The notes beneath the pieces are model-generated. The model ran no database searches, had not been told where the DNA came from, and saw nothing but the letters and a program-made list of their open reading frames with translations. This document shows positions 44,411 to 64,000 of a stretch of 64,000 nt of DNA, piece after piece; positions within the stretch are counted from its first letter, which is position 1, and every line of letters begins with the position of its first letter. The translations under genes were made by a program, and so were the position numbers. The DNA is from Nageia nagi (lineage: Eukaryota; Plantae; Pinophyta): positions 149,730,001 to 149,794,000 of the forward strand of contig JBITNC010000001.1 in assembly GCA_050084985.1 (NCBI GenBank), written 5' to 3'.

Positions 44411-46111
44411 CTTATTTAAGTAAATTTTCTTTCTTCTAAATTCTTTCTAGCAAATTTGCATTTGTATAAAATTTTGGAAAAAACCTAAGTTTTCATTATT
44501 ACATTTTTCACGCATTTTAAAAATCTAATATCTATCAAAATTTTAAAATGGTTGAGATTCGTTATAATGATTATGAATTTGGATGTGTATGTCATATTTC
44601 AATTCCTAAATAAATCTCTTGTAGAAGTATAATAATTTAAGTTAAGATTTTATATGTATATTATATTGACCATGAGAAATTATAGAAAGATCATAGATAA
44701 TATTTAAAATGTTCTTATAAATTTTGAAAAAAAAAAAAAAAAACAAATACTAATAAAAAAGAAGATATCAATTCATTTTCTTATGATATGTATAATAGAA
44801 AATATTGTAAAATTAACTAGTTTAGTCGTTTATAATTATTTAGGTATATCAAATATTATTATTATTCTTTTTTGTTAATATTGAAGGTGGTTTTTAGGGA
44901 ACTGATAATCGCTTTACATTTAAGGTAATTTTGAATTTATCCCTCGACCTCCCCAGGGTATGAACAATAGTCCCTTAACCTAAAGGAGGGCTCAAACACA
45001 TTCAAAACTTGGAAAAAATATATCATTTTAAGACCTTGTACATATATTAAGATAGGCATTAAAACTTGTACACTTTCAAAAAAATATTTGAAACTACATG
45101 CTCAAATCTGAAATTTGAAATTTAGACTTCCTGCTCAAAGAGAGAAGTTGTGAGCCTTAGAGGTTGTGGTTCTGAATCTTAAGCCCAACCTTCCAAACTG
45201 TTGGATAGGCTAGGAAGATTCCAGTTGCTGCTCACCTAAGCAAACTAAGCAAGTCCCTTCTTGCATCTTTCCTACTTTTGGGTCAAAACCAGCTCCACCA
45301 TTCCTCCACCTCGACCTCAAACCCCTATGAGCACTTCTAATATACCTTGATTTGCATCCTTTTATGGATTAGAATCCTTTGTTATTATTTTTATTTTTTT
45401 CTCTAATTTTCGACACAAATTTTGACGTAAGTAATATAATTGAAGTTGTGTTGATTTTTGCATCCTTTTTGGTTTTGTTTTTTGCATCATTTGTGCCACT
45501 TTTTGCATCTTCAAGTTGCGTTGGATTGCATCAGAAATGACATTTGATGGTGTCTTTTTTACATCTCTTTTTAAGCATTTTACCCCCTCATACCTAATGT
45601 TACATCTTTTTTGAGTCTAAAATTGCATCGATTTTGTTGAAAAATTATTTAAAAAAATTAATTTTAATATTTAATGTAATTTTTTCTATTTCCATTAATA
45701 CATCAATCATACACCAAAATAATACACCAATCGTATGCCAAAATAATATGCCAATCATATGCCAATAATACATTAAAATAATATGCAAATAATACACCAA
45801 TAATATGCCAAAAATATGTTAAAAATACACCAAAATAATATACCAATAATACGTTAAAATACACCAAAATTGAGTCAAAATACGCTAAATTATGCTAAAA
45901 TATATATGCCAAAATATGGGTCGATAAATAATGATAACATCCACATCAAATTATGTCGAAATAACATACATATATATGTCTGAATACAACAAAATGATAT
46001 ACATTATACATCAAAATATATCAAAATGATATACTCATATGTATCAATACATACAATATATCAAAAATGATATAATGGTATTGTCTACATCATGAATACA
46101 TGATAGTATTA

Positions 46112-47790
46112 CTAGTCCTCAATATTAACCTCCTCTTTATATGCAGACTCACTACCTAAGCCAACACTTGATGTACCACTTGAGGATGCACCACCTAAGG
46201 CACGATCATGACTTGACGACTCACCACCTGACTCACTACCTGAGCCACTATAATGATTAGGTGTTTCCCTACTAGGATGTGTCAACTCATCATCAAAGAA
46301 ATCATCGAATCTCACGTCTCGAGTAGACAACAAATCACTCTCCTTCGATGCACCCTCCTATGATACACCTCAACCCTGTGAATCATGTTTATGATGTAGT
46401 ACTTGCTTGCAAATAATAAAAAATAATTATTAGTGTACATACAATTACACTTACAAAAAATATGCATCACCTACAAGAAATTCATATGCCTTTATTAATT
46501 AAAATAATTGAAATTACTTACACCAGCATTCAACCTATCCCTCAAGACCTAGTAACCATATGTGATGCCATATTATCATTCATTATCATTAGGAAATCAA
46601 TTGAAATTTCTTAATTGTAAAAAAAATTAATTAGTACTATATTAAAGACCATTTATCTATTCATTTTCAAAAATTAAATATCATTGAAAATCACATGTAG
46701 TAAATATACTTACAAATTGGATATCCACATACTTCGCCCCTCCACTTCCTGCTTGATGCATAATATTGCATCCCAATTTGACAAGTTGAGATTTCATCGC
46801 TTTTTCTTACAGCATCTCCAAGCCTTCCACTTTCCTTTCATCCACCTCAGCTACTTTCTTCATTAGCATCTTCCAAACCTTTTTATAAAATAATTAATTA
46901 GTATTATTTTAAAAAAAAATTAATTAATCATGTTCAAATATTAAATATCAATGATAATATTCCATACCTTCTTATGGATGTCAACTGGTTTCTATGCTAT
47001 ATTTTTTTGTCAGGAGAAAGTTTCATCACTTTTCATCTGACATGATCTCTAACCCTTTTTAGATTCAATCTTGCTTGTTGGAGTGCTTTCTTCTTGCTCC
47101 ACCCTTCACCGAATTCATGTTTCAAGTTTTGTTATTATTCTTTTTTTTGCTACAAAAACATAAATTATAACAAATTAGTTTTAGTCTCTTGAAATATTAA
47201 ATGAATAAAAGCAAAACATACACACCAAAAATAATACAAATAATTAAAATAAATACATACCAAAATCATCTTGTTTCTTCCATGACTTGTCAAGAGTTTC
47301 TGCAAATTCTACTATTGTAGCATTCTTGAGAGATTTGTAAAATAGTTGAACCTAAAAAATAGTCGAAATGATATTAGTAAATCAATATACTTATAATCAA
47401 TATGTAAATTTATATTTTTCAAATGTAAACTATTACAATTTTCATCTTTTAGGACCTCTCCATTTGGCCTCACAAAAATTTGAAGATTTTTAGAACCTTG
47501 AGTCATTGTCAACCTAATTTGTTGATTCACTAACTCTACACATACATATATTACATGGATCACATCAAAACATGCTTAAAAATATAAATTAGAATAATTT
47601 TTTATTAATTCTTAATAAATTAACTAATTATAAATAATTACCTGAAGGAGCAGCGCCTTGTCTCTATTGTGTGGTAACACCACCTGCTCCTCTAGCCTTG
47701 TCACCCTCAAGTATTAACATCAACTCATCATGGCTAAACATGCATTTAGCAAATTTGACAACCCCCTTTAACTTCTTTATTTGTTCAAGA
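46112..47790 (-). pseudogene. Multi-exon TnpA/Ptta-like CACTA gene remnant
   Basis: Short exons between AT-rich GT-AG introns; ..FGEGWSKKKALQQAR.., ..IMHQAGSGG.. (similar to the H..GS.G motif of Transposase_24), Ser/Gly-rich C-terminus (ORF 46112-46333). Confidence 0.4.
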
Positions 47791-48814
47791 AATTAAATAA
47801 ATAAGTGATTACATGTCCTATTTAATGAAATATATATAGTATAATTGTAAACTATATTGAAAATAATATCAAATTTACATTTACTAAATTATATTAAATT
47901 TAATAAATGTACTAAATTTACATTTACTAAATTAATGCCAAATTTACTAAATTTTATTTTACATAATTTAGTATATAAGCAAGATTTGTGAAATTGTGAG
48001 TTTAAGAAGCAACATTTTGAAGCATAAGAAGAGTTTTAGAAATTAGGAGCAAAAAAACTTTTTTGGAAAACAAGGAAGTTGAGAATTTCATAAGTATGTC
48101 CCAATTTATGTCGACATTTCATTTTATGGTACAATGTAAAGAATTTATCATAATTTTTTGGTGCATTTTCAATTTTATGGTGCATTGTTGAGAAGGAATG
48201 GATTTAATTTCGATTTTTTTGGTGCATTGTTGAGAAGGAATGGTTTTAATTTCATATTTCATGGTGCATTGTTGATAAGTTCAAGTAAAAATTCATGAGT
48301 AATTCAAAAACCCCTAGCATATGGATTTAATTTCTGATTTTAGGATGCATTTTTGATAATTTATAGTAAAAATTCATGGAGAATTTGAAAAACCCTAGCA
48401 TCTGTAGTGTAAATTCATGGGAAATTGAAATATGCAAGCAAAAACTTACATATCTTGTGAAAAATAAGAATAATGGAGAGGAAATTACAAGAAACTTATT
48501 TACCTCCATCAAAATGCAAAATCCTATGAGTAAACATTCAATAAAGTAAAATAAATTAAAATCAAGTGAAATCAAGTAAAAATTGAGTTAGATTCAAGTG
48601 AAATAAGCTAGAAGGCCACTTACTTGGTGCTCTCCCACTAGCAAATCAAATTTGTATCCTCTTTGACCAAGAAATGGTTATGAGGAAAGTGAAAAATGAC
48701 CCCTATTTTTAATTTTTGAATTATTAGTGTAATCCAATGCAAAAAGGAATGCAAATTTGCATCTAATTATGCTTATTTCGAAAAAAATTAAAAATTTAAG
48801 TTAAAATCATTATC

Positions 48815-49274
48815 ATTTGAGTTAGCAGTTAGGGTTTGGGTTAGCAATTAGAAATTAGGTTAGGGTTAGGGTTAGCAGTTAGGGAGGGTTCGTAGTTACA
48901 ATTACAATTAAGTTTAGTGTTAGTGTTAGGGTTAGGGTTAGTAGTTAGGGTACTTAGTGATTAGGGTTAGGGTTAGCAATTAGGGTTTAGGTTAGGGTTA
49001 ACAGTTAAGGTTTAGATTATGGTTAGCAATTTAGGTTAGGGTTAGTAGTTATGATTATAGTTAGGATTAGGGTTAGTAGTTAGGGTACTTAGTGGTTAGA
49101 GTTAGGGTTAGTGTTAGGGTTAGAGTTAGTAGTTAGGGTACTTAATGGTTAGGGTTAGGGTTAGTGTTAGTAGTGGTTAGCATTTGGTTTAGGGTTAATA
49201 GTAGTTAGGGTTAGGGTTAGATGTGGTTAGTGATTAGTAGTTAGGATTAGGGTTAGTGCAAATTAGGGTTAGTG
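48815..49274. repeat. Degenerate (TTAGGG)n array (resumes briefly at 50258-50272)
   Basis: Runs of GGTTAGGGTTAG mixed with TTAGCAG/TTAGTAG/TTAGTG variants. Confidence 0.9.
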
Positions 49275-50251
49275 GGGTAAGTGTAAGAAGATGAGTCCCA
49301 CTTTGGAGGAAGTCTTATGAACTGCTAGGTTTTTGTATTTTTTAATACTTTTTTATTTTTTTGGAATTATGAAAAAAATATATTTGCATAATCTGCATAC
49401 AATTCTTCATAAGTTAAATAAATAATTAATTAAAAATGATAAGTTTTATTCAAATTATACTTGCCAGACACAAGCATTTTTTGAAACGATAATCATGGCT
49501 AATAAAAATTAATAAAAAATAAAATATTCATGAAAAAATACAAAAAATATCCTCCATAATATTTAGTGTCTTAGGTATCTTTAACCAAAAGTATTTAAAA
49601 AATATTTAAATTTAGGTCTAATTATGTTTGACGAACATGATGGGTATGGTCCTAAAATTGTATTTTTTAAATAATGGGTTTTGTATTTATTTACTAACTT
49701 TTTATTTTTTTTGAATTATGAAAAAAATAATACAATCTACACATAATTCTTCATAAGATAAAAAAACAAATTAAAAATGATAAGTTTAGGTCAAATTATG
49801 CTTGTCGAACACATGCAATTTTTGAAATAGTAATCACGATCAATAAAAAATTAATAAAAAATAAAATATTCATGAAAAAATTACAAAAAAATATCCTCCA
49901 CAATCTTTAGTATCTTAGGTATCTTTTATTTAAAGGATTTTAAAATATATTTTAATTTAGATCAAATTATGCTTGTTGGACATAATGGGGGTATGGTCTT
50001 GAAACTATATTTTTTGAACAATGAATTTTAAACATGCCTATCCAATATTAATTTATATCATTTGGGTATTAGAATAAATTACATATTTGAAAACTAGACT
50101 TTAAGAACTACATTTTTACCAAAGTGACCATTTTTAAGAATTAAACTCTAAGTGCTTCAAATTTTGAGATCAACTATGACTAAACCTAAAAATCAGGGAA
50201 AACACTTCCACTTTTTGGCCAAAAGTGGGACTCATCTTCTTGCCCTTACCA
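49275..50251. mobile_element. Non-autonomous TIR element (MITE-like) with a 4-bp TSD, possibly Sola superfamily
   Basis: TIRs GGTAAGTGTAAGAAGATGAGTCCCACTTT / AAAGTGGGACTCATCTTCTTGCCCTTACC (27/29), flanking AGTG/AGTG, internal ~355-bp tandem duplication. Confidence 0.8.
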
Positions 50252-50284
50252 AGTGCTTAGGGTTTGGGTTAGAATATTTGTAAA

Positions 50285-51704
50285 TGTATAACTATATCTC
50301 TCAAAGCGAATGAGGCCTATAAAATTTTGAAATACCATTACATCTCTTATAGACTACCTCATGGGTTCAATATTTGTAAAAGGATGAATTTTCCATTTAT
50401 TTTGACATTTCCTATTCTCATCAAAACATTGTATTTCAAAAGATTATAATCTATAAAACCTTATCTTAAGTGGGATGGTAATCACCTTGGAAAAGGTTTT
50501 TTCATCAACCAATATTACATCTATTATTTATCCCTTATGATCGTAATTTGGGGCTAACCTTTAGGAGAGATTTTATGGATACATAAAAATTAGAATTTAT
50601 TCAGATAAGGAATTCACTTTCTCTCTAACCTCATTTGTTGATAAACCAAGGAATATATTCATTAGGATAAAATTTGTATCGATTTCAAACTGACCAACAT
50701 AAATAAGGATTCTTTTAAGTATCTAAAAGAACATTTCCCTCTTCACTTACAATAAAAGATGGATAGTTTATTCTAAAAATCATAACAAAATGATTGGATA
50801 TGGTATCTTAACACCCCAATTCATAGTTATAAAGCCTAAGTTTGGTGATTAGTGGATCTCTTCCTACCTCCTTATGATGAATACTTTTAATAAATTTTGG
50901 CTTCTCCATTCACCTAATTAAAATGGGAAGTTAATTTTTTTAACTTTATAAGACCCCTACCAAGTAAGGCTAGATAAGACACTTTTACATGAATTTTTTT
51001 TCTAGGGTCCCCAAATAAGCACCTAATTGAAGGACTTGTACATCATTGATTCTCTTTACCCATAATGATAACTCCAAAAAGAATTTTTGTATACCATCTT
51101 AGCATGTCAAAAATATTATTAGGTTGAATGGATTTGGATATTTCTTTTCTCTCTCTAATTCTTCACTCAGGGTTCCTATGGTGATACATTATATTATAAT
51201 ACTTCATTCCTACCCCCTATATACTTCAAAGTCTAGCATTTGTTTTGATTGGGGATACTACTCTTGATATGAAAATCAATTTTTTTAATTTTCTCCAACC
51301 TACTCCTAATAAATTTGACTATCTTGATATAATGAGAGTTTATTGATATTTTGTTACAAACCTAAAAGGTAATTATGGAGGTAACCTATTTAAGGGTATA
51401 TTTTAATGACACATTGAGGGTAGGCCCAACTAGCCATTTTGAAAACTTAGTATTATTTTATGTTTCCATAAAGGTTATGCAATATTTTTACAAATATTGC
51501 ATGGATCATCACTTCTTATACCCTAATCTAACCATGGGTTATGATGACTTTACAAACATTCCCACTATCACCGTTATCATGATCATTAAGGAGGGGGAAA
51601 TGGTTTCTAACTATAGATGGGTAGAAATTGAGCCCATGTTGCATATGATTGATGATGTGTCCTCTATTACCTTTAGCCTTGATCACAAATTTTTTAATCT
51701 CTAA
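50285..51704 (+). pseudogene. Unidentified decayed ORF inside the CACTA element
   Basis: Coding-like composition over 1.4 kb ending in ORF 51375-51704; no motif recognised. Confidence 0.3.
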
Positions 51705-52299
51705 TTATTGAATAGTTCCCATCAATATATTGATCCCATATAAACATATATGTATAACCTTATTAGGAATAAAATCAAATCTAATACTATATTTCAAACA
51801 ATTTGTTATTCATAATTACATTCATTGCATAGAATGTATATCATCATTTTATATTTGTAGTTGAAAAAATAAGAGTGCAAATGGGAGTGGAAGGATACAC
51901 ATTCTAAAGCATATTGTTAATAATTATATATAGCTTTGGAATTAAATAAATATTTAAGAAAAATATTTTTATAATATCATGGAAACAAAGGGACAATGAT
52001 TTTAGTAAACTTGCATATCATGGAAACATAGTTGGAAGCATCCAAATCTTGAATTAAATATTTTCAAAGTACTCTCATAAGCATTTCTTAATGGTATTTG
52101 AACTTCTTTAATAATTCTAAAAGTAAAAATTTTGCTTACGTATTTTTGAGTTGGTCTAAGATTGAAAGATTTATTGATTATTACTATTCATGTACTAATC
52201 TCTTTTTTTCTTTAAATTGTAAAACATGTTAGTGACTTGGGTTATATCATTATGCTAATGCGTGGGAAGATTTACATGTTATTAGATTAATATATTTAG

Positions 52300-53636
52300 A
52301 TATCACTACCTCAACATCAGAGAGTTATTAGGAGTGATGTGTCATTTGATTCAGATGAGTTGCCTACATCAGCTACTAGGAGATTGAGAAGTGATGTGTC
52401 ATCTAATTCAAAGGAGTTTTCTACACTAGGTACTAGGAGGCCAAGGAGTGATGTGTCATCTGATTCAAAAGAGTTGCTTGCACTAATTATTAGGAGGCCA
52501 AGGAGTGAAATGTCATTTGATTCAAAGCTAGATATATTTCATGTAGGTATCATGAGGAGTGATGTTTAATCCGATGAGAATGAGGTAAGCTAAATATTAT
52601 TATGTATGATGTAGAAATGTGAGATCATTTAAATTCTTACTTTCATGATATTATTTGTAATACTTAACTTTATTTTATTGCTAATGTTGCAAGAACAAAA
52701 TGTGCAAAGGATCAATGAGTCATCCTCATCATCAAAATATGATGATTCCCATGAGGTAATTAATTAGGATTAAAATTTGAATTGATTTTTGTATTCTTAT
52801 ATATTGAATTATATCAAATAAAACTAAATAAAATCAATATGTAGATACAATAAATGAAGCTAAAATAATGTGTAGGTCCATTAGATGAAGTTAAAGATAT
52901 GTCTACAAGAAGAAAATTTCAAAATTTACTTCATCAATTAGTAATGGATGCATGTTCTAGTGCACATAAGGAGCTAATTGATCTACCAGAAGAGGATGTT
53001 CATGATTTGGTTTTGATGCACATGCCACAAAAGCTACAACTTAAATATCAACATAGATATGATCATGGGGCATATGGTGCATGGCCAACTGAAATACCTT
53101 TTCCAAAGGCTTATGAGATCTTTCCTTATTGTGGTCATTGATACATGATCAAACCATTTGAAAAGTGCTTTGGATATGGATTTTCTATACGTAGTATTGT
53201 GGTTGTTACTCCATGTTCTAAGATAGAGCCATTGATGCCATTTTGTGGGCCAATTTACATAACAATGAATTGAAAATAATTAGCATCACATATGTATAGG
53301 ATGTCCTCATATGGATTATGTACAAATGATTTCTATATTCCATATTTGAAGCATTCAAAACTCTTATACATTGATGGTCGACCAAAAATACAAGGAAACA
53401 TAGCTGGATACGTAAACATTTGTGTAGGCAAAGAATGGGCACCAAATTGTGAATTTAACCAATGTACTAATGATAAATAAGCCTTAATGGGTAGACAAAT
53501 CAGTAATTATATAGTTGTTGTTCCTATTAAAACTCTTAATGTTGGTGATGATCTACTAGTTCACTACAATTATAGGATACCTACTTTAAGATGTAATATA
53601 AGAAGTTTGGAGTTAGGAGGTGATCAAAATGTATAA
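52300..53636 (+). pseudogene. SET-domain protein (putative lysine methyltransferase) carried by the CACTA element
   Basis: One frame from 52899 to 53636 with four internal stops: IKPFEKCFGYGFS..LMPFCGP..YIDGRPKIQGNIAGYVNICVGKEWAPNCEF..YIVVVPIKTLNVGDDLLVHY, i.e. the SET motifs in order. Short upstream exons include a 57-bp (19-aa) repeat at 52332-52565. Confidence 0.75.
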
Positions 53637-53869
53637 TTCATCTAGGACCAAATTCGAAAAATAAAAATAAAAATTAATATATTATTAATGTGTATGAATG
53701 GATGTATCAATTTGTATGTATGGATCATGTGTACGCTTGTATATATCAATTTATTATATATATGGATGTATCAATTTGTATGGATGTATCAAATTATATG
53801 TATGGATCGATTATGTGTATCAATAGATGTATCAAATTACTTTGCACTTGTTACACTTATTTTTTATTA

Positions 53870-56232
53870 TTTTGAATTAATGGTTTGTAACAACAGGTTT
53901 ACCAGGCAATAAATTGTCATTATGAGCACTTAAGAATGATAATTATTACACCAACATTGCTTCGAAATAATGTAAGTAGGAGAGATAAGAAGATACTACA
54001 AAAAGTATGGACCCCTAAATAATGTGCAAAGTTTATGTCTAAACCTAATCCAATAGATCCTATTCAAATACCTATGTAGGATTCAAGCACTGATGATGAT
54101 GAATTAATAGAGGATAATATTGGTCATGATGATGATGATAATAATGTTGATGAAGAAAATTGAATTGATGGTTTACTTGAGTCTCTCTATGTTCATGTTG
54201 ATGATGATGAAAGAGATGATGATGAAATAAATGATGATTTACAAAAGGATAGCATGTATAGTGCTTCCAAAACTAAATTATATGAAGGAACAAATAGAAT
54301 TGTATTATCGATGATCCTACTTCTGATGAACATAAAAGCCAAACATGGATGGTCAAATATAAATTTCACTTCTCTTCTGACAAATTAATTTTATTTTATT
54401 TTCTGATATTTTAATTTTTAATTTCAATCAAATTAATTATATAAATTATTTTTCATTGGTATTATAGGTTACTAAAAGAAAAGTTGTTTTCAAGTGATAA
54501 TGTCATCACAGATTCATGCAAAAAAGCATGTGACATTATGAAGGATGTAAGGGTCAAGTATAATTCATACTGTGAATGTAATAATGATTTCATATTGTAT
54601 ATAAGAGAAGAATATGATACAAATACTAAATGTCCAAAGTGTAAAGAATCAAGATACAATAAAAAAGAGAAAAAAAACTCTAAATAAGGTTGTTCGCATA
54701 ATGCCAATCCTTCCTAGGTTAATATGGATATTTTAGTGTAAGTCACTTACAAAAATTAATGGACTAGCATGTAATAAATAGAAGAGAATAAGGTGTGTTG
54801 TGTATACCTACAAATGGTAAAGCAATGAAACATATAGAGGAGAAGTGGCCCGAGAAATTTAAAAATGAACCTATGAGTGTTAGATTAGGTTTAGCAATGG
54901 ATAATGTCAATATATTTTTGAACAAACATCCACTTATTCATGTTGGTCTATTGTTATAATCAATTATAATATACTTCCATGGATTTTTATAAGAAAAGAG
55001 CATTTGACATTGGTTGTTATAGTCCCTAGAAGGAAACAAGTTAAACACATGGATGTCTTACTTAAACTAGTAATTGGTGAGTTGTAGCTCTTGTGGAAAG
55101 AAATTCAAATATATAATTTATATAAACCTATCAATTAGAGGTCATTCAAATGTTATGGCATACTATATTGGACTATACATGATTATCCAAGGTTTTCTAT
55201 TTATGTAGGTATGCATATATATAGTAGTTCATACATGTGAATATTTAATTTTTTTTATTTGTGTAGGTATGCATTCTATAATAAAACTTATCATAGGCCT
55301 TCATACAAAAGGTTATCATGCTTGTCCATGATGTGTAGAAAATCTTTCATCAAGATTTTCTAGTCAAATGTGTAAGATGGAATATATTGGCCTATGGTCA
55401 AGTAGATAAAACCCCTATTCCTATTTATGAAACTCCTATGATTTGGTTCATAAAATACTAGGAATGTGTGAAAAATGTTAGGAAAAGATCCCAATATGAA
55501 TGTACTAATTTAGGATCAGATGATGAGATTATTCTTGGCAAAAATGATTTACTAGTAGGTGAAATATTATACAATACAATATATTTGTAATATATTTATT
55601 ATTTTGAAAATATGTAGGTTTGTAAAGTTTCAAATTCATAAGTTTGCCAATTAAATGATGAATTAGTTACATGTTTTTAGGCATGAATAGATTATTAGTA
55701 TTTTATACATTGAAATATTGGAAGGAGTTATTAGTGATACATTTAATGGATCATATGCATATTGTAAAGAATGTTGCATCTTTTTGTATCTGTATATAAC
55801 AAGCAAAGAAGAAGATACTGATGCCATGATAAATGACTTAAAATATATTCAAAAAATGAGATCTTTATGGATAACATAGTATCAACATTGAAGAAAAGAA
55901 ATACCTATGAATACATGGCTTATGAAAAAGATGAAGTGAAAAAGTTACACAAACTTATTCAAAACATCAAAATACCAACAAATTATGGATCATCTCTAAG
56001 AAGTGCATTCAATGCTTATGGTAAAATCACAGGATTCAAGACTCATGATTACCACAACTTCATGAAGGTATTGATCTCATATTATATTTTTCACATTTTT
56101 TATAGAAATAAAAATATTTTCTATATTTATGCAAATACTTTCTCAACATATTTTTTCAATTGCAATTCGTGGATGTGGGGATCTATCTATTGATCTTATA
56201 TATGCAATCGATCAACTATCATTATTTCTAAG
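53870..56232 (+). pseudogene. tnpD: CACTA TnpD/Tnp2 transposase (Transposase_21), with introns; resumes after 63868
   Basis: KAKHGWSN..FTSLL; CNNDFILY..CPKCKESRY; SVRLGLAMDNVN; YSCWSIVIINYN; WTIHDYP; KGYHACP*C; DHMHIVKNV; GFKTHDYHNFM. Confidence 0.9.
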
Positions 56233-56249
56233 GCATATCATGTTATAGT

Positions 56250-56668
56250 TGGATAAATTAACCCTTTTTGAATTAACTTCTACTCTACCAATATCTCAAG
56301 AAGACACTTTTAACATCAACATAATAGCACAATAACTCAATCCAATCTCACAAATAACACAAGATATAAAATGGTTCCTCCCTTATTGGGAGTACATCCA
56401 CTAACTAAGATCTTATTCTTAAGGACCTCTTTTACAAAATCTTTTCTCTCTCTCATACACTCTAAACTTATAGAAAATCTTGCATTAAAATTATGTAACT
56501 AGAAAAGGGGAGGGTTCTTCTCTTTTTATAAGAAGAAACCCACTCTATACTTAATATTTTTAATCTTCTTCCTATTTTTATTTCTTTAATAATTTAAGGT
56601 ATCTAATGATAATTTAAGTACTAAATGAATTTACATTAAATAGAAATATTACATTACAAATTCTAACA
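56250..56668 (-). repeat. 3' LTR
   Basis: TG...CA direct repeat of 63404-63862. Confidence 0.9.
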
Positions 56669-57689
56669 CTCCCCCTTAATGTAATATTGGGATAGATTGT
56701 AGAGAGAAGAAGAAAGATAGAGTAAGAGAGAGTTCTCCAAAAAGATACACATAGAGATGAGAACTTTTACATCATTGAGAAATAAGCAAGATATTAGTTT
56801 AAGACTCATTACCATACCATTTGATAAAATGGTTTACAATACAATCATTAACCATAGTTGATTTCATTGTAAGTGTAGTCGATCAATACTAAGTTGACAT
56901 ATGAGCCTTCATGATCCTACCCACATGAAGTAAGTAACCTACACTCTCAAGATGAAACCTGCAAACTACAAGTGGCTCATAAACAATATCAGTTATATGC
57001 ATCATATAACATTCATATCAATCATAAGATAAATAAACTAAGTAATTCATCCATAAACTGATCAATGATGCACTATAAGTCATCATAAAGATTTCAAGCC
57101 AATACTTATATTCATTTGTTGTATATAGAAATATGTGTTGATCAATAATAAAAAAAGTATATGCACATATATAAGTTACTCACATATGGATAACTAAATA
57201 GTGCTAATAAACATATATTGATTCCTCACATAGTGATAACAAAAAAAAATGTATTATGAATTCCTCACATAGAGTGAACTAACCACGATGGTGTATATTT
57301 AGATTAACACTATACAATAAAAAAGCCTCCTAGGGATGAAGTTTTTATCACATATATGAATTCAACACAGAAATTCAAACTTCACTCCCTCTTGAGAATA
57401 ACTTCACTTCCATAAGAAACTTTCAAAGTGTGCATAATAACGTTTCTAAAGCGATTAGTGAATTAATCAAAAGAGTCAAAGTTAGATGAACAAAGCTACA
57501 ATTATTCCATAAAAACCTTTATTATTGATATAATGTGCTTAAATTTATGGTACACTATAATTCATCACTAATATGCCAAGCCCATACTTATAGTTATCAA
57601 ACAGAGGAATGTATAAACAAAGTATACAAATAAAAAAAGTTCAAAAAAAATATTAAGGAAGAAATTACAATGGATTCAAAAAGAATTTA

Positions 57690-60600
57690 ATAATTACTCT
57701 CTTTTTGAGTGCAACTTCAAGAAATGAACTTCAAGAAGGAGCTAGGTAAACAAATCAAGAGAGTTTAGGATTGATGGATAATACTGCAAGTGTAAAAGAC
57801 CATCCAAAACCTTCTCTCTAATGAAGTGGGCTTGGATTTCTATATGTTTTATTCTCTGGTGAAAAATAAGATTCTTTTTCAAAGTAATAGCTGATTGATT
57901 ATCTGAAAAAATTTGAGATGGATGAACTTTCTCATAGTTAATTTCTTTCAAAATATACCTCAATAAAATGGCTTCTTGAGCTGCAACTAACATTACATGA
58001 TATTCAACTTTAGTGGTGGAGAGAGAAAAAGTAGGCTACTTCTTGTATGCTGAAGAGATAGCACCTAAATCAATGTTAAACACATAAGTAGAGGTTAATT
58101 TCCTATCATCTCTATCTTCCCCATAGTCAGAATCAGAGAATCCTAAGAGAAAAATGAGGGCAACTTGTTATACTTGAGAGCAAGATCCTTAGTGCTCACA
58201 ATATACATCAAAATTTGTTTAACAACATTGAAGTGCTCAACATATAATTTTTTTATAAAACGTGTCATCAAATTGATAACAAAGACAATATCTAGCTTGG
58301 AGATAGTCAAATAAAGAAGACTACTAATTAGTTGATTATAAGTTGTAGCATCTATCAACTAAGAGTTGGAACTAAGAAATAAAATGATTCTAGGAGAGAC
58401 TAAGATTGCAGCATGCTTGCACTCCTCCATTCCAAAATTTTGCAAGATATTTAAGATATGCTTGGATTGACTAAGGTAAGTACAATCCTTATATTGGTAC
58501 ACTTGCATACCAAGGTAGTAGTGCAATATATCAAGATCAATCATTTCAAAAGTTATCTTAAGTTTAGATATGCAATCTTATATGAGGACTATATTATTCC
58601 CTATAATCAATAGATCATCCACATAGAAAAGAATCAAGATCAAGTCTTGTCCTTGGTTGAGCACATAAATATCTGAGTCAAAGAAGCATTTAGAAAATCT
58701 AATGTCCTCAAAGTATCTTAAAATCTTTCTGTACCAAGCCCTAGGTGCTTGCTTAAGTCTATACAAAGACTTCTTTAACTTGCATATAAAAACTTATTTG
58801 CCTTTAACAACAAACCCTTCTCATTGGTTTATATAGATTTCTACATCTAATTCACCATTGAGAAAAGCATGCTTGACATCAAGTTGAAAAATTTTCCATC
58901 CCTGAGTTACTAAAAGAGCAAGGATTACCCTAACAATAGGCATCTTTACCACTAAAGAAAAGGTTTCCTCATAATCAACTCCATATTTTCAAGAGAAACC
59001 CTTATCTACTAACCTTGCTTTGTATTTCTTAATCTCTTCAATTGAATTATATTCTACCTTGTAAATCCATTTGTTACCAATCACATTTCATTCATTGGGA
59101 TAAAGAACCAAATTCCAAGTTTGATTCTTCATTAAAGCCTCATACTCCATATTCATTGCATTCATTTAACACTTATGCTTTGAAAATTCTTTGTAGTATG
59201 AGGGCTCATTCTTGTTATCAATTTTAACAAATAAGTATTTATTAATGGTCATACTCTTTTTTATCCTTTATGTTGGAGAGTTTTATTCCTTGGATGACAT
59301 ATCCACACTAACATCCAACTAGTTAGGAGCAACATAATAATCATCATCCTCATCAAGGTTCTTATAAGAAGTAGACTCTTCAGGTAGTTCATTGAACTTT
59401 ACATCCCTTGATATAAAGATTGCATCGGAATAAGGTTGATATAGCATGTAGCCTCTATGTTGATTATCATTACCCATAAAGATACACTTTTTGGATATTT
59501 TATCTATTTTCTTCCTTTTCTTAAGAAAAATAAAGGCATAAGCATTATAGCCAAAGATCCTAAAGTGAGAGATGTTAGGTTTCTTTTCTGACCATGCCTC
59601 ATATGGAGTTTTACATTCAACTATTTTTATAAGATACCTATTTAAGATATAGATTTCAATGTTTACAACTTCACCCCATAAGAAGCTAGAAAGATCTCCC
59701 AACATACATCTAGCCATTTCTTGAATGGTTCTATTCTTCCTTTTAGTTACACCATTTTGCTAAAGAGTGTAAGGGATAGTAAACTACCTCTTGATTCTAT
59801 ACTTGGTACAAAAATTATTGAATTCATTCTTATTATACTCACCCCCATTATTAGATCTTAACATCTTGATTTTGAATCCAAACTGATTTTCTACCAAGGC
59901 TTTGAAATCTTTGAACCTATCAAAGGTTTGATCCTTATGCTCTAAAAGATAACCAAATGTCATCCTACTAAATTCATCAATAAAGGTCAATACATAAGAT
60001 GTTTCTCTAAGTGACTTAATTAAAAAGAGACCCATCAAATCTGTATGCACAAGTTGAAGAGGTTGAGTTGCTCTAGTTGCCTTATCTTTTGAAAATTTTT
60101 ACCAATTCATTTTACCTAGAATGCACTTCTCACAAAGATCAATTGTAGGTGATATTGTAGGCAAACCTTTGACAAGTTCATGATATTTTTTGACTTGAAT
60201 GTTCTTATGGTTTAGGTGATCTAATTGATGATGCCAAAGATTTTGTCTAGAACAAACATGAGTTACAAGGTACATCTTTGTTGGAGATTGATCTACAATG
60301 TAAAGGTAATCTTTCACTGAACCTTTCATCAAAGTGGTAAGACTCTTTTTCATGCACCAAGAGTGTAAGTTAAACTCAAAGGAGTAATCCTTTCTTACAA
60401 TCTGAATTACAAAAAAGAGATTCATAGTGAGTTCAAGAATATAAAGCACATTAACAAGAATCTTCCTTTGTATCAACACATCCCAATACCTTTAAATTCA
60501 AGGATTAAACTATCATCTACCATAATTACATATTTTCTATACTTATGAAAGTTTTTAAACTTATCATTTTCAAAACATATGTGATTAGTGCATTCAAAAT

Positions 60601-61560
60601 CAATAATCCAATCACTTACTAAAGTGTGAGAGTTGGAGTAAAAGGTAACAACATAAGTAAAATTCTTATTCTTATTCTTATTATTAGATTTGTTTGGTTT
60701 TTCAAATACTTTTTCACCTTGCCTTTTCTTTTTTCTAAAGCAATCAACTTTCATATGACCATAGATGCTATAAAAATTACAATTTTTGTCAAATTTAGCT
60801 TTAGTTTTCTTTAATTTATCATGATCATAATTCTTATTGTTCATACCTTTCTTAAAATTCTTCTTAGGAGCATTAGAACCCTTCTTTTGGTTATTGTTCA
60901 TCTTTTTGAAGTGAAGCTTCATTGGACCAAGTGCCATAGATGGCTCCTTAGGTGTGGTGATCAACACTTTATTATTAAGTATTTTCTTATACTTAAAGAT
61001 AAGCCTTGATAGATTTTCCAAGGAGAACACTTTTTTTCATCATCAAGCCTAGTTTTAATAATAGTTACAAACTAACTAAACTTAGCAGAGAGGCTTTTGA
61101 AGGATAATAAAAGTTAAAAACTCATAATTGATCCAATTACAACCACACCCCACAAGTTATTTCCTAAGTTCAACAACCTTATTTAGATATATAGCCACAC
61201 TTTTATTTTTTTTTTCACATGATTAAAGCAACTTTTGAAAAATGGTGAACCTCCTAGAAAATTTTGTGCCAAGGTAGATACTCTTTAATTTATCCAAGCT
61301 TCCTTTGTAGTGTTTTAAGAAGATATCATAAGGAGGATCTCATTTAAAACTGTAACAAAGATCATAGAAGTTGCCAAATCATTCTTAGTATTATAAGCTT
61401 CAAGTTTCTTCTCCCTTGATGGAGCAAATTTGTTTTCATTGATAATCATCTAAAGTTTTTGTGCTTAAAGTTCTGTCTTCATCCTATGTTTCTAAATACC
61501 ATAGTTAGAACGATATAAGATATGGTTTAGTGCAAAAGAGTCTCCTATTGCTACAAAATA
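57690..61560 (-). pseudogene. copia gag-pol polyprotein (gag, PR, IN, RT, RNase H), disrupted
   Basis: WIIDFECTNH (PR), LWHHQLDH/HTDLMG/FIDEFSR (IN), YRLKQAPRAWY and FYVDDLLI (RT), SDNQSAI..KHIEIQAHFIREKV (RNase H), in copia order. Confidence 0.95.
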
Positions 61561-63403
61561 ATATGAAGGAGATAAATAATTTAAGCATACATGTTGAATT
61601 TAAAAATATTAATTATACAAATACATATTTAAACTAATCAACAAATCAAATGCTTAATTGTAAATAAGAATTAAAATCGTACATCCAACATCTTCATCAC
61701 CAAGTATAACTGAAAGAGAGAAAAATTAAGGTTTATTTTTTTGTTTAAAATTAAACCTTTACCCGGATGCCCACAAGGAGCCCAAGTCCTACCAATCCTC
61801 AACCAGTTTCCCTTGGGCAACAATATACTCTCACAAGGAGAAGTACTAGTTATTTTCTTAGGTTGTGACATATATTGGATTGACCAAATTAATTATCTTG
61901 ATCAAGTTTTCAATTTTTCTCTTAGGTTATCAAGATAATCTCTGAATGGATAGACGAACATGTGGTATCATTACACACATGCATGTCCATCTATATGGAG
62001 TTAAATCCAAACTTACAAAGGACTTAAGGGTAATTAAGAAGTACAAACTTTTTACCACTTGGAACGTCGAATTAAAAAGCTCCAATCCACCTTATCCTCA
62101 TCTCATGGCTCCCCAAACAAGTCATATTGTAGAAAAAATATGCAAATATGTTCATTTTAAGGGAAACTAATTTTTAATATTTGCATATTTTACATATAAA
62201 GTAAAATTGAAAAATAAATAAAATACTTTAAAAATAAAACTATATCCAACATCATCCATAAGTATGAACCAAAGAGTCCAATAGGTTTTGTCACAACCCC
62301 TAATGGATCTTTTTAGAAAATTTCATTAATTTTAAGTAATAAATGAGCCTAAGAGTCCAATAGATTTTGTTACAACCCTTATTAGAACTCTTTACAAAGG
62401 TCTATTATCAAAAATGATGAATTCTCCCCCTTGTTACTTAAAATTAGATTTAAAATAATTCCTTATTTGCAATTTATCATCAAAAAATAAGGTAAAAATA
62501 TTTAAGAAAATGTTATCCATTCACATGCATTAGGATAAAATATTAAATCATGCATTTAAAAGTTGTATCTAACCATATGTCTGCATCACACATACATTAA
62601 AATAAAATATTAATTCATACATACATAATTAATCCATGTATTATTAATATTAATCTATGCATAATTAATTAACATTAATCCATCCATGCATAATTAATTT
62701 TCCACTTGAAAGCATGCTATTTTTAAAAAATTCCTTAAAATAATTTGCACTTATGGTAAAATTAGCAAATAAAGACTCAAATTTTAGATAGCAATTAATG
62801 CAACATTTACCTCATACTATTTTTAATAAAATGAACTATATATATATAAAGTTTTTTAAAAAAATGCATGCATTATTTTTCTATTTTTAAAAAATGTATG
62901 CATGAATTATTTAAAAAATGCATACATGTAATTTATGCAATTATTAAAATGTATTATATTGTAAATTTTTTGCATATAACATTATATTAAAAAAATTTGT
63001 AAAATTTTTAACTATCTCTACACTAAATAGAAACTTGCAAATTTAAGCTATAATAACTTATTATTGCTAAATTTAAGCAAATCTAATTTTACTTAAAAAT
63101 TTTGCAACTAACAAACTATTGTTAGTGAAATTAATGCATAGTAATAGCTTAAAAATAGAACTAACATGTTAGTATGAAAAAAAATATGGCAGTAATATCT
63201 AATTTGAATAAATTTTGCTAAATAAAATTTTATAATAAAATAATCACAAATTGGTTAGTAATAAAGCAAAATTTGATAATGGACAAGGTAGAAGGGAAAT
63301 TATACCTTCAAACCCTTTTACCTCAACAAAATAGATGGAGAAAGAAGAGGAATGACCTTTAAAGATGTTGATGAGGAGCCTCCATCCATGTTCTGATACC
63401 ACT

Positions 63404-63862
63404 TGAAGAAATTAACCCTTTCTGAATTAACTTCTACTCTACCAAGATCTCAAGAAGGCACTTTCAATATCAATAGAATAGCATAATAACTCAAGCTAAT
63501 CTTACAAATAACATAAGATATAAAGTGGTTCCTCCTCCCTTGGGAGTACATCCATTAACTAAGATCTTCTTGTTCTCAAGGACCTCTCATACAAAATCTC
63601 TTCCCTCTCTCACACACTTTAAACTTGTAACAAAGCTTGCATTACAATTGTGTAACTAGGAAAGGGGAGGGTTCTTCTCTTTTTATAAGAAGAAACTCAC
63701 TTTATATTTAACCCTTTTTCTATTTTTAATATATTACCTATTTTTAATCCTATTTCTATGTTTATTCCTTTAATACTTTAAGGTATCTAATGATACTTTA
63801 AGTATTAAATGAATTTAAATTAAATAGAAATATTACATAATATTACATTACAAATTTTAACA
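63404..63862 (-). repeat. 5' LTR
   Basis: Adjacent to the PBS; TGAAG...TAACA. Confidence 0.9.
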
Positions 63863-64000
63863 ATAGTACGGCTCTATGAAAAATAATATAGCATGTGTTT
63901 ATTCTTATTTTCTAATATTTTATGCATTTTGGCATTTAATATTTTAACGATATTATATTTTCATGTAATAGATCAATAGCATAGAGAAATTGTTAAAATT

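Follow-up and report, generated by a model that had tools for sequence, protein, structure and literature searches.

Does the 64,000-nucleotide stretch of Nageia nagi DNA analyzed here, hereafter called the window (contig JBITNC010000001.1, positions 149,730,001 to 149,794,000 of the forward strand), hold a CACTA transposon with a SET-domain gene of its own? The question was raised by an earlier note on the same DNA, which singled out a plus-strand reading frame at 52899-53636, close upstream of a TnpD transposase, and proposed that it is an integral gene with which the element writes histone marks. The results of our analysis indicate, with a probability that we put at about 80%, that the window contains one long-dead copy of an old and very high-copy plant CACTA family of the En/Spm type, in which a decayed, complete SET-type gene lies 5' of TnpD.

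The open reading frame (ORF) comprises 245 codons from its own conserved ATG at 52899 and is interrupted by exactly four stops, as had been reported (TGA at 53139, TGA at 53271, TAA at 53277 and TAA at 53478), whereas the other five frames of the same stretch contain 14-29 stops. Composition-preserving shuffles of this sequence, which belongs to a window that is AT-rich throughout (~30% G+C), yield 19.8 +/- 4.1 stops (P(<=4) = 0.0002). This deficit identifies the frame as a relic ORF rather than a chance reading. The suggestion that all four stops arose by C>T or G>A changes holds for three of them, namely CGA>TGA at 53139, TGG>TGA at 53271 and probably CAA>TAA at 53277, but not for the fourth: codon 53478 reads GAA in four of the sister copies described below, the TAA being confined to the window and L001, which is its closest relative, and this stop is therefore a G>T change. 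At 53139 the sister copies have CAA, AGA or TGA, which fits a CpG hot spot. At 53277, L006 has AAA and the other five of the six copies, which represent both subfamilies of the element, have TAA; the relatives have an amino acid there (Q, K, H, R or N), which is Q in the family fragment P0015.

Along the frame, the SET motifs occur where the earlier note had placed them and align column for column with those of Pfam-positive SET relatives. They are, all on the plus strand, the GxG motif (GYG, ~53181-53189, aligned to GLG), PFCGP (53241-53255, aligned to PYVGP), LYIDG..GNIAGYVN..PNC (~53367-53450, aligned to TYIDG..GNLAGFVNSS..TNC) and GDDLLVHY (~53538-53561, aligned to GDELFIQY). The ORF ends ~25 residues beyond the last of these motifs, and the stated lack of a Cys-rich pre- or post-SET region is confirmed.

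Searched exhaustively with HMMER, a set of 1.84 billion representative proteins yielded 13 matches at E<1e-3 to a 66-aa core piece of the frame (53280-53477). The homologues, at 6e-6 to 1e-4, include the intact 272-aa protein P0008 (E 9e-6), and the other matches are fragments of the same transposon family and more distant proteins. P0005, P0006 and P0012 were disregarded as long repetitive proteins matching over short stretches and having no SET domain. Five relatives exceed the gathering score of the Pfam SET family PF00856 (22.4 bits), namely P0008 (28.2 bits, over model positions 2-104 of 105), P0007 (30.2), P0010 (25.8), P0019 (24.1) and P0021 (24.4). The profile check that the earlier note had asked for is thus answered by these homologues and not by the window's own stop-free pieces, none of which gave a Pfam match on its own, so that the SET assignment rests on the homologues. 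In one of the sister copies, a longer stretch without stops (L003:10520-10780) has SET as the sole family reported, at a sub-threshold 14.3 bits.

The four window pieces are collinear with P0008, motif by motif, from 'YGAWP' to the C-terminus. Read with X at each stop and scored by a local script, the joined frame reaches 92 bits against P0008, 95 bits against P0019 and 65-95 bits over the five Pfam-positive homologues, against at most 4.2 bits in 2000 shuffles; the intact proteins matched in this way have 191-272 aa. SET-like motifs that arose by chance in an AT-rich non-coding stretch might have been suspected from the Pfam-negative single pieces. That idea is refuted by the homologue search, the Pfam-positive relatives and the scores of the joined frame, beside the stop deficit and the conservation of the frame in five other copies, and its residual probability is vanishingly small.

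Further searches place the family among SET proteins. A search of Protein Data Bank (PDB) sequences with the family profile returned only two weak matches, both to the Legionella SET effector LegAS4/RomA (E 0.025). In a search by language-model features (Atlas), P0008 and P0019 fall among SET clusters, with ten of the ten best named matches, and the nearest neighbour of P0008 is a Streptophyta cluster of ~263-aa 'SET domain-containing proteins'. Word-indexed homologue searches, with P0008 and with the family alignment, recovered the family itself only, and one with the N-terminal piece recovered three metagenomic fragments (JGI and ENA). Outside the family, the best matches in collections of 1.84 billion and 5.8 billion proteins are unnamed and 33-49% identical, and no close host parent of the ORF was found. 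We take it as established that the family is of the SET kind and, by homology, that the window copy is too. P0008 and P0021, two intact proteins of 272 aa, share 87% identity; together with P0017, a third intact relative of this length, they lie on Logan and ENA contigs of 1.1-1.4 kb, which are possibly transcripts.

The AlphaFold2 model of P0019 (191 aa) has a predicted local distance difference test score (pLDDT) of 54 and a predicted template-modelling score of 0.58, with confident N- and C-terminal strands. All Foldseek rows shown for this model are SET domains, the best being MLL1 (prob 0.99, E 1.7e-3, template-modelling score ~0.3), and they include LegAS4, EZH2, SETD8, NSD, SETD2 and SET7/9. 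When the model was compared with 48,161 chains by VIA-align, 26 of the 28 top rows were SET/PR methyltransferase domains, with a best Z of only 4.4; the exceptions were 9l4t_A, BurB (rank 10), and 9ya0_IA, a Toxoplasma conoid-ring protein (rank 28). In the structure prediction that had been proposed as a check, SET/PR structures dominate the matches of the P0019 model, but this model is of low confidence and that of P0008, from an 18-row alignment, is unusable (pLDDT 35). The matches are singly weak, and their pattern would be consistent with a SET fold.

Whether the gene belongs to the element was examined in sister copies from metagenome contigs, retrieved by an alignment scan that gave seven loci, of which five are distinct (L001 = L002, L003 = L004). 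They form, with the window copy, two subfamilies ~22% apart at the nucleotide level, one comprising the window, L001, L005 and L007 and the other L003 and L006. The order of leader exon 1, leader exon 2, SET ORF and TnpD blocks is identical in the window, L001, L005, L006 and L007. In L003 the leader and SET ORF are followed directly by the 3' arrays and terminus, and this copy, having no TnpD, is a deletion derivative. Private insertions differ between the copies, a long terminal repeat (LTR) element being present in the window and a 5.3-kb insertion in L001 (3211-8540), where it splits the SET ORF in its final part. Three DNA runs, each from a different organism, yield 17,000-41,000 contig pieces apiece that match the 4-kb stretch around these genes at a likeness of at least 80%, and the counts over SET positions are similar to those over TnpD positions.

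The SET ORF keeps its place and orientation in six copies that represent two subfamilies, and in the window it lies ~7.5 kb in from the 5' terminus (45332) of the element; it is thus a family-wide cargo rather than a one-off captured exon. In this respect the earlier claim of an integral gene is upheld, given a complete start-to-stop ORF that is collinear with 272-aa relatives and sits inside a CACT(A/T)CTAA end. Pack-CACTA or transduplicated fragments consist of partial or chimeric host exons with a close parent; this ORF is complete, and a close parent was not found in either protein collection. An ordinary host SET gene that merely adjoins a CACTA insertion would explain the adjacency and nothing more. 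It is refuted by the recurrence of the same junction, spacer and leader exons in five independent contigs with different flanks and nested insertions, by the position of the ORF well inside the terminus and by the thousands of contig pieces per DNA run, which leave this explanation with next to no probability.

The transposase lies on the same strand, 3' of the SET frame, as had been stated: its conserved coding blocks begin at ~53890-54160, that is 250-530 bp past the SET stop codon. The part of TnpD in the window before its interruption (53891-56249, plus strand) covers the 5' two thirds of a multi-exon gene with many stops, collinear with L001, L006 and L007. It includes a Cys-rich CxxC block (54445-54684, plus strand) and a Transposase_21 domain (PF02992) at 54792-55237, which was matched by three consecutive stop-free pieces in model order (E 2.6e-5, 2.7e-9 and 0.085). 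In L001 and L006, which are collinear with it, TnpD extends into DUF4218 (E 1e-14 to 1e-16) and DUF4216 (E 3e-4). The AG at 53895-53896 was considered as acceptor of the first TnpD exon and dropped, most family contigs being different at this site.

The decayed 5' terminus of the window copy (CACTTCTAATATAC, 45332-45345, plus strand) was located by alignment with L003. The local alignment of the two begins exactly at CACT(A/T)CTAA, where L003 reads CACTACTAAATTATGCC from 3653 and the window CACTTCTAATATACC from 45332; the same start can be written as CACTTCTAA for the window (45332) and CACTACTAA for L003 (3653). The inverted 3' end, ...AGTAGTG, is found in L003 at 11982, and that of the window copy lies outside the window. 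L003 (3653-11982, equal to L004) has both termini (CACTACT...AGTAGTG) and retains the upstream block, the arrays, the leader and the SET ORF. By its TnpD domains and CACTA-type termini the window element is a member of the CACTA/En-Spm superfamily. The window copy is inactive: its SET frame has four stops, and its TnpD has many and is also interrupted by an LTR retrotransposon.

Several results weigh against the reading of a once functional SET gene belonging to this CACTA family. In addition to the Pfam-negative pieces of the window and the weak structural matches reported above, the SET piece served as query in the retrieval of the sister loci, which makes copies of the family that have no SET gene undetectable. 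A 3-bp target-site duplication was not confirmed in L003, where the flanks are GTA and TCC, a mismatch that may be due to decay or to a misplaced 3' end. All six copies of the gene are broken by stops, frameshifts or deletions. Pairwise ratios of nonsynonymous to synonymous rates (dN/dS) are 1.0-1.65 for SET, compared with 0.5-1.15 for TnpD in the same pairs, and the ratio of nonsynonymous to synonymous changes is the same for those common to at least two copies as for private ones, both in SET (5.3 vs 4.7) and in TnpD (3.3 vs 3.9). The stops common to several copies reflect either recurrent C>T hits or a gene that was already dead while the family was still spreading; with TAA at 53277 in five of six copies and TAA at 53478 in the window and L001, the gene may thus have been inactive before the spread was over. 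It is also conceivable that the window copy and L001 represent orthologous or duplicated loci and not independent insertions. No RNA run was found to cover the stretch, and one presumed-RNA run gave three contigs, at <90% likeness and over TnpD only. The canonical His and Cys of the NHSC motif, finally, are replaced throughout the family, by NSS (GF/YxNSS, with Ser or Asn for His) and in the window by NIC.

The proposed dN/dS comparison among copies thus detected no purifying selection on SET. The same is true of TnpD, which must once have been functional, and the test therefore has no power on so few and so decayed copies. The motifs are deeply conserved between the family and relatives of 33-49% identity, which shows that at some time the protein was under selection.

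These data bear directly on the possibility that the gene is a neutral passenger, namely a host SET gene or retrocopy captured once by an ancestral CACTA, by Pack-CACTA transduplication, and then copied along without serving the element. CACTAs pick up host sequences, a well-established behaviour, and the absence of detectable constraint and the shared stops are what a passenger would show; the Streptophyta cluster nearest to P0008 in the Atlas search could represent the parent family. Conversely, the cargo has the start and stop of its full-length relatives and is neither a fragment nor a chimera, its position and orientation beside TnpD are fixed in subfamilies that have diverged by ~22%, and it is kept even in the derivative that has lost TnpD. 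No close parent was found, and the apparent lack of constraint comes from the same comparison that finds none in TnpD. We consider the passenger a serious possibility, which nevertheless falls clearly below even odds.

The replacement of the His residue is also a reason to ask if the product was ever an enzyme. The family sequences describe what appears to be a minimal SET domain of an NSS rather than NHS subtype, without pre- or post-SET region, and the absence of the NHS His from every member renders catalysis uncertain. The protein might accordingly have had the SET fold and never been a methyltransferase, acting as a binding or adaptor module, for example for a histone tail or the transposase. 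In favour of such a pseudo-enzyme are the Ser or Asn that takes the place of His in RFINHSCxPN in all relatives, the lack of a post-SET region to close the lysine channel and Pfam scores that barely exceed the threshold. Yet the GxG motif, the motif-III Asn and the Tyr of ELxxxY, in addition to the xNC element, are kept across relatives with 33-49% identity, and LegAS4, the best PDB sequence match, aligns N-F-S at the position of the His. LegAS4 is an active methyltransferase, and some PR/SET proteins that have no such His are active too. On balance, a module that never had catalytic activity seems rather unlikely. That the product was a catalytically active lysine methyltransferase dependent on S-adenosylmethionine has a likelihood that we would place a little short of even, the alternative being a SET-fold binding protein.

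The account that we favour would start from an ancestral autonomous element with two genes on the same strand, SET and then TnpD. The first would have been a small (~245-272 aa), intron-less gene for a minimal SET protein and the second, ~250 bp further on, a multi-exon TnpD with Transposase_21, DUF4218 and DUF4216. Acquisition of the SET gene was presumably a single event that preceded the split of the subfamilies, and the element itself would have provided for its expression, possibly with the two conserved leader exons (GT-AG) in front; later, the gene would have shared the neutral decay of each inserted copy as a whole, under a heavy load of C>T changes. A benefit to the element from an action of the protein on chromatin or a partner protein can be suggested tentatively, and we are inclined to doubt it. 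The specific proposal that the element writes histone marks for anti-silencing finds no support in a family in which all copies are broken, RNA evidence was not found in the runs searched, purifying selection is not detectable and the NHS His is absent. Improbable, in our estimate, is a fuller scenario in which a lineage of land-plant CACTAs encodes an active minimal SET lysine methyltransferase for its own use, expressed together with the transposase by way of leader exons common to both and setting a chromatin mark on the element, or modifying a host or element protein, for escape from silencing or steering of integration; P0008 and P0021 would then be living versions of it in other plants.

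Classical plant CACTAs such as En/Spm, Tam1 and Caspar encode the TnpD transposase plus TnpA. The present family resembles them in its CACTA-type terminus, subterminal repeat arrays and a TnpD with Transposase_21, DUF4218 and DUF4216. It differs in having a SET-like gene 5' of TnpD and internal TTAGGG arrays that flank the coding core, and in that no gene of the Transposase_24/TnpA type was recognized; Pfam found neither this nor any other domain in the conserved upstream block and leader exon 1. No classical land-plant CACTA with a SET gene came up in the literature that could be searched, and the earlier statement that no such cargo has been characterized holds in this narrow sense. In a wider sense it does not, for SET cargo is known in other transposons.

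HarbingerS and Phytophthora MuDR families are described as encoding a histone methyltransferase of the SET type (Kojima & Jurka 2014, Repbase Reports, as cited in PMC12730594), and SET genes are also on record as Helitron captures. The former are, like the present family, cut-and-paste DNA transposons with a SET accessory gene beside the transposase; by their descriptions, on which this comparison is based, they belong to the PIF/Harbinger and Mutator superfamilies and to other hosts, unlike a land-plant CACTA with TnpD. Closer in classification is Plavaka, of the EnSpm/CACTA superfamily, in the red alga Bostrychia moritziana, whose accessory gene PAG2 combines SET (PF00856) with a DNA methylase (PF01555; bioRxiv 10.1101/2025.02.11.637652). 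Both are SET-bearing accessory genes of the CACTA superfamily in giant, high-copy families with mostly degenerate copies. PAG2, however, is a methylase-SET fusion accompanied by two further accessory genes in red-algal elements of 17-19 kb, whereas the gene described here is a stand-alone minimal SET ORF of ~245 codons directly 5' of a plant-type TnpD. With VANC, the anti-silencing protein carried by VANDAL (Mutator) elements according to the account in PMC12730594, the likeness would be one of possible logic only, that of a transposon-borne protein acting on its own chromatin state; the two have no relation in sequence or fold, and VANC is not an enzyme of the SET kind.

At the protein level, the minimal SET and PR-SET proteins (SETD8, Schizosaccharomyces pombe Set7, the PR domains of PRDM proteins and giant-virus SET proteins) and LegAS4/RomA have, like the family, a SET core without Cys-rich pre- or post-SET regions, and LegAS4 shares the non-canonical residue at the His position after the motif-III Asn. 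They are what the fold searches and, for LegAS4/RomA, the PDB sequence search matched. Identity to these proteins is 13-24% over the aligned parts, and in the family the insert that separates motif III from the xNC element is longer. Transposons that carry chromatin enzymes are rare and provide the clearest cases of mobile elements acting on the host silencing machinery, and a SET-type gene is an uncommon cargo for those of land plants. In the present family such a gene was once fixed in a CACTA lineage that went on to thousands of copies, and the intact relatives offer proteins suited to assays. What limits this case is the fossil state of every copy studied here, with a function that is presumed.

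Upstream of the SET ORF lie two putative leader exons on the plus strand. The first (52300-52584) is kept in six copies and ends at a conserved donor, GAG|GTAAG, with the GT at 52585; it contains a stop at 52567 in the window copy, where the other copies have TCA. Within it, Tandem Repeats Finder (TRF) detected 3.4 copies of a 57-bp tandem repeat (52333-52526) that encodes an R/S/D-rich unit of 19 aa and is present in all sister copies. The second leader exon (52693-52755, 63 nt) is Ser-rich, with a GAG|GTAAT donor in all six copies (GT at 52756) and an acceptor, TAG|GAAC, that is conserved in L001, L003 and L006 and in which the AG is mutated or shifted in the window copy. Joining of these exons in frame to the SET ORF was rejected, the conserved GT-AG sites giving a wrong phase or a stop. 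We take them for a leader or for a portion of some alternative product, and by analogy a shared leader as in En/Spm may be envisaged.

The 5' subterminal region of the element (45346-47860, no strand assigned) contains repeats with a GCATC motif and is homologous to L003 4073-6190 at 70-74% identity. It includes A/T-rich tandem arrays (45696-46074) and a family-conserved block of 1.4 kb (46491-47860; L003 4836-6190), situated between the 5' terminus and a telomere-like array, which has 74% identity across subfamilies and a strong negative GC skew. This block may be a minus-strand gene of the element, for instance an equivalent of TnpA; the minus-strand segments of it that were tried against Pfam gave no match.

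The telomere-like array is a degenerate, TTAGGG-like sequence of ~460 bp inside the element (48816-49275, plus strand; TRF periods 6 and 53), 5' of the leader exons, and is also present in L003, L005 and L007. Inverted arrays of the same hexamers occur 3' of the coding core in L003 (11325-11844) and L006 (5618-6032), so that the arrays bracket the genes like subterminal repeat fields. Between the array and the leader exons, the sequence from 49276 to 52111 (no strand assigned) is partly private to the lineage of the window and L001 and consists of insertions relative to L003, L005 and L007: L001 is collinear from 50427, L005 aligns in short pieces only and L003 passes from the array to the leader exon.

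The retrotransposon that interrupts TnpD is of the Ty1-copia type and lies on the minus strand at 56250-63862, with LTRs at ~56250-56654 and 63403-63862. TnpD is cut at 56249/56250; the inserted element has TG..CA ends, a 5-bp target duplication (ATAGT) and minus-strand ORFs that are integrase- and reverse-transcriptase-like, including YVDDL, and its empty site is preserved in L001 and L006. With only 82% identity between its LTRs the insertion is old, and the CACTA copy older still. TnpD resumes after it at 63863 on the plus strand, with 90% identity to L001 11262-11364, and runs off the window at 64000.

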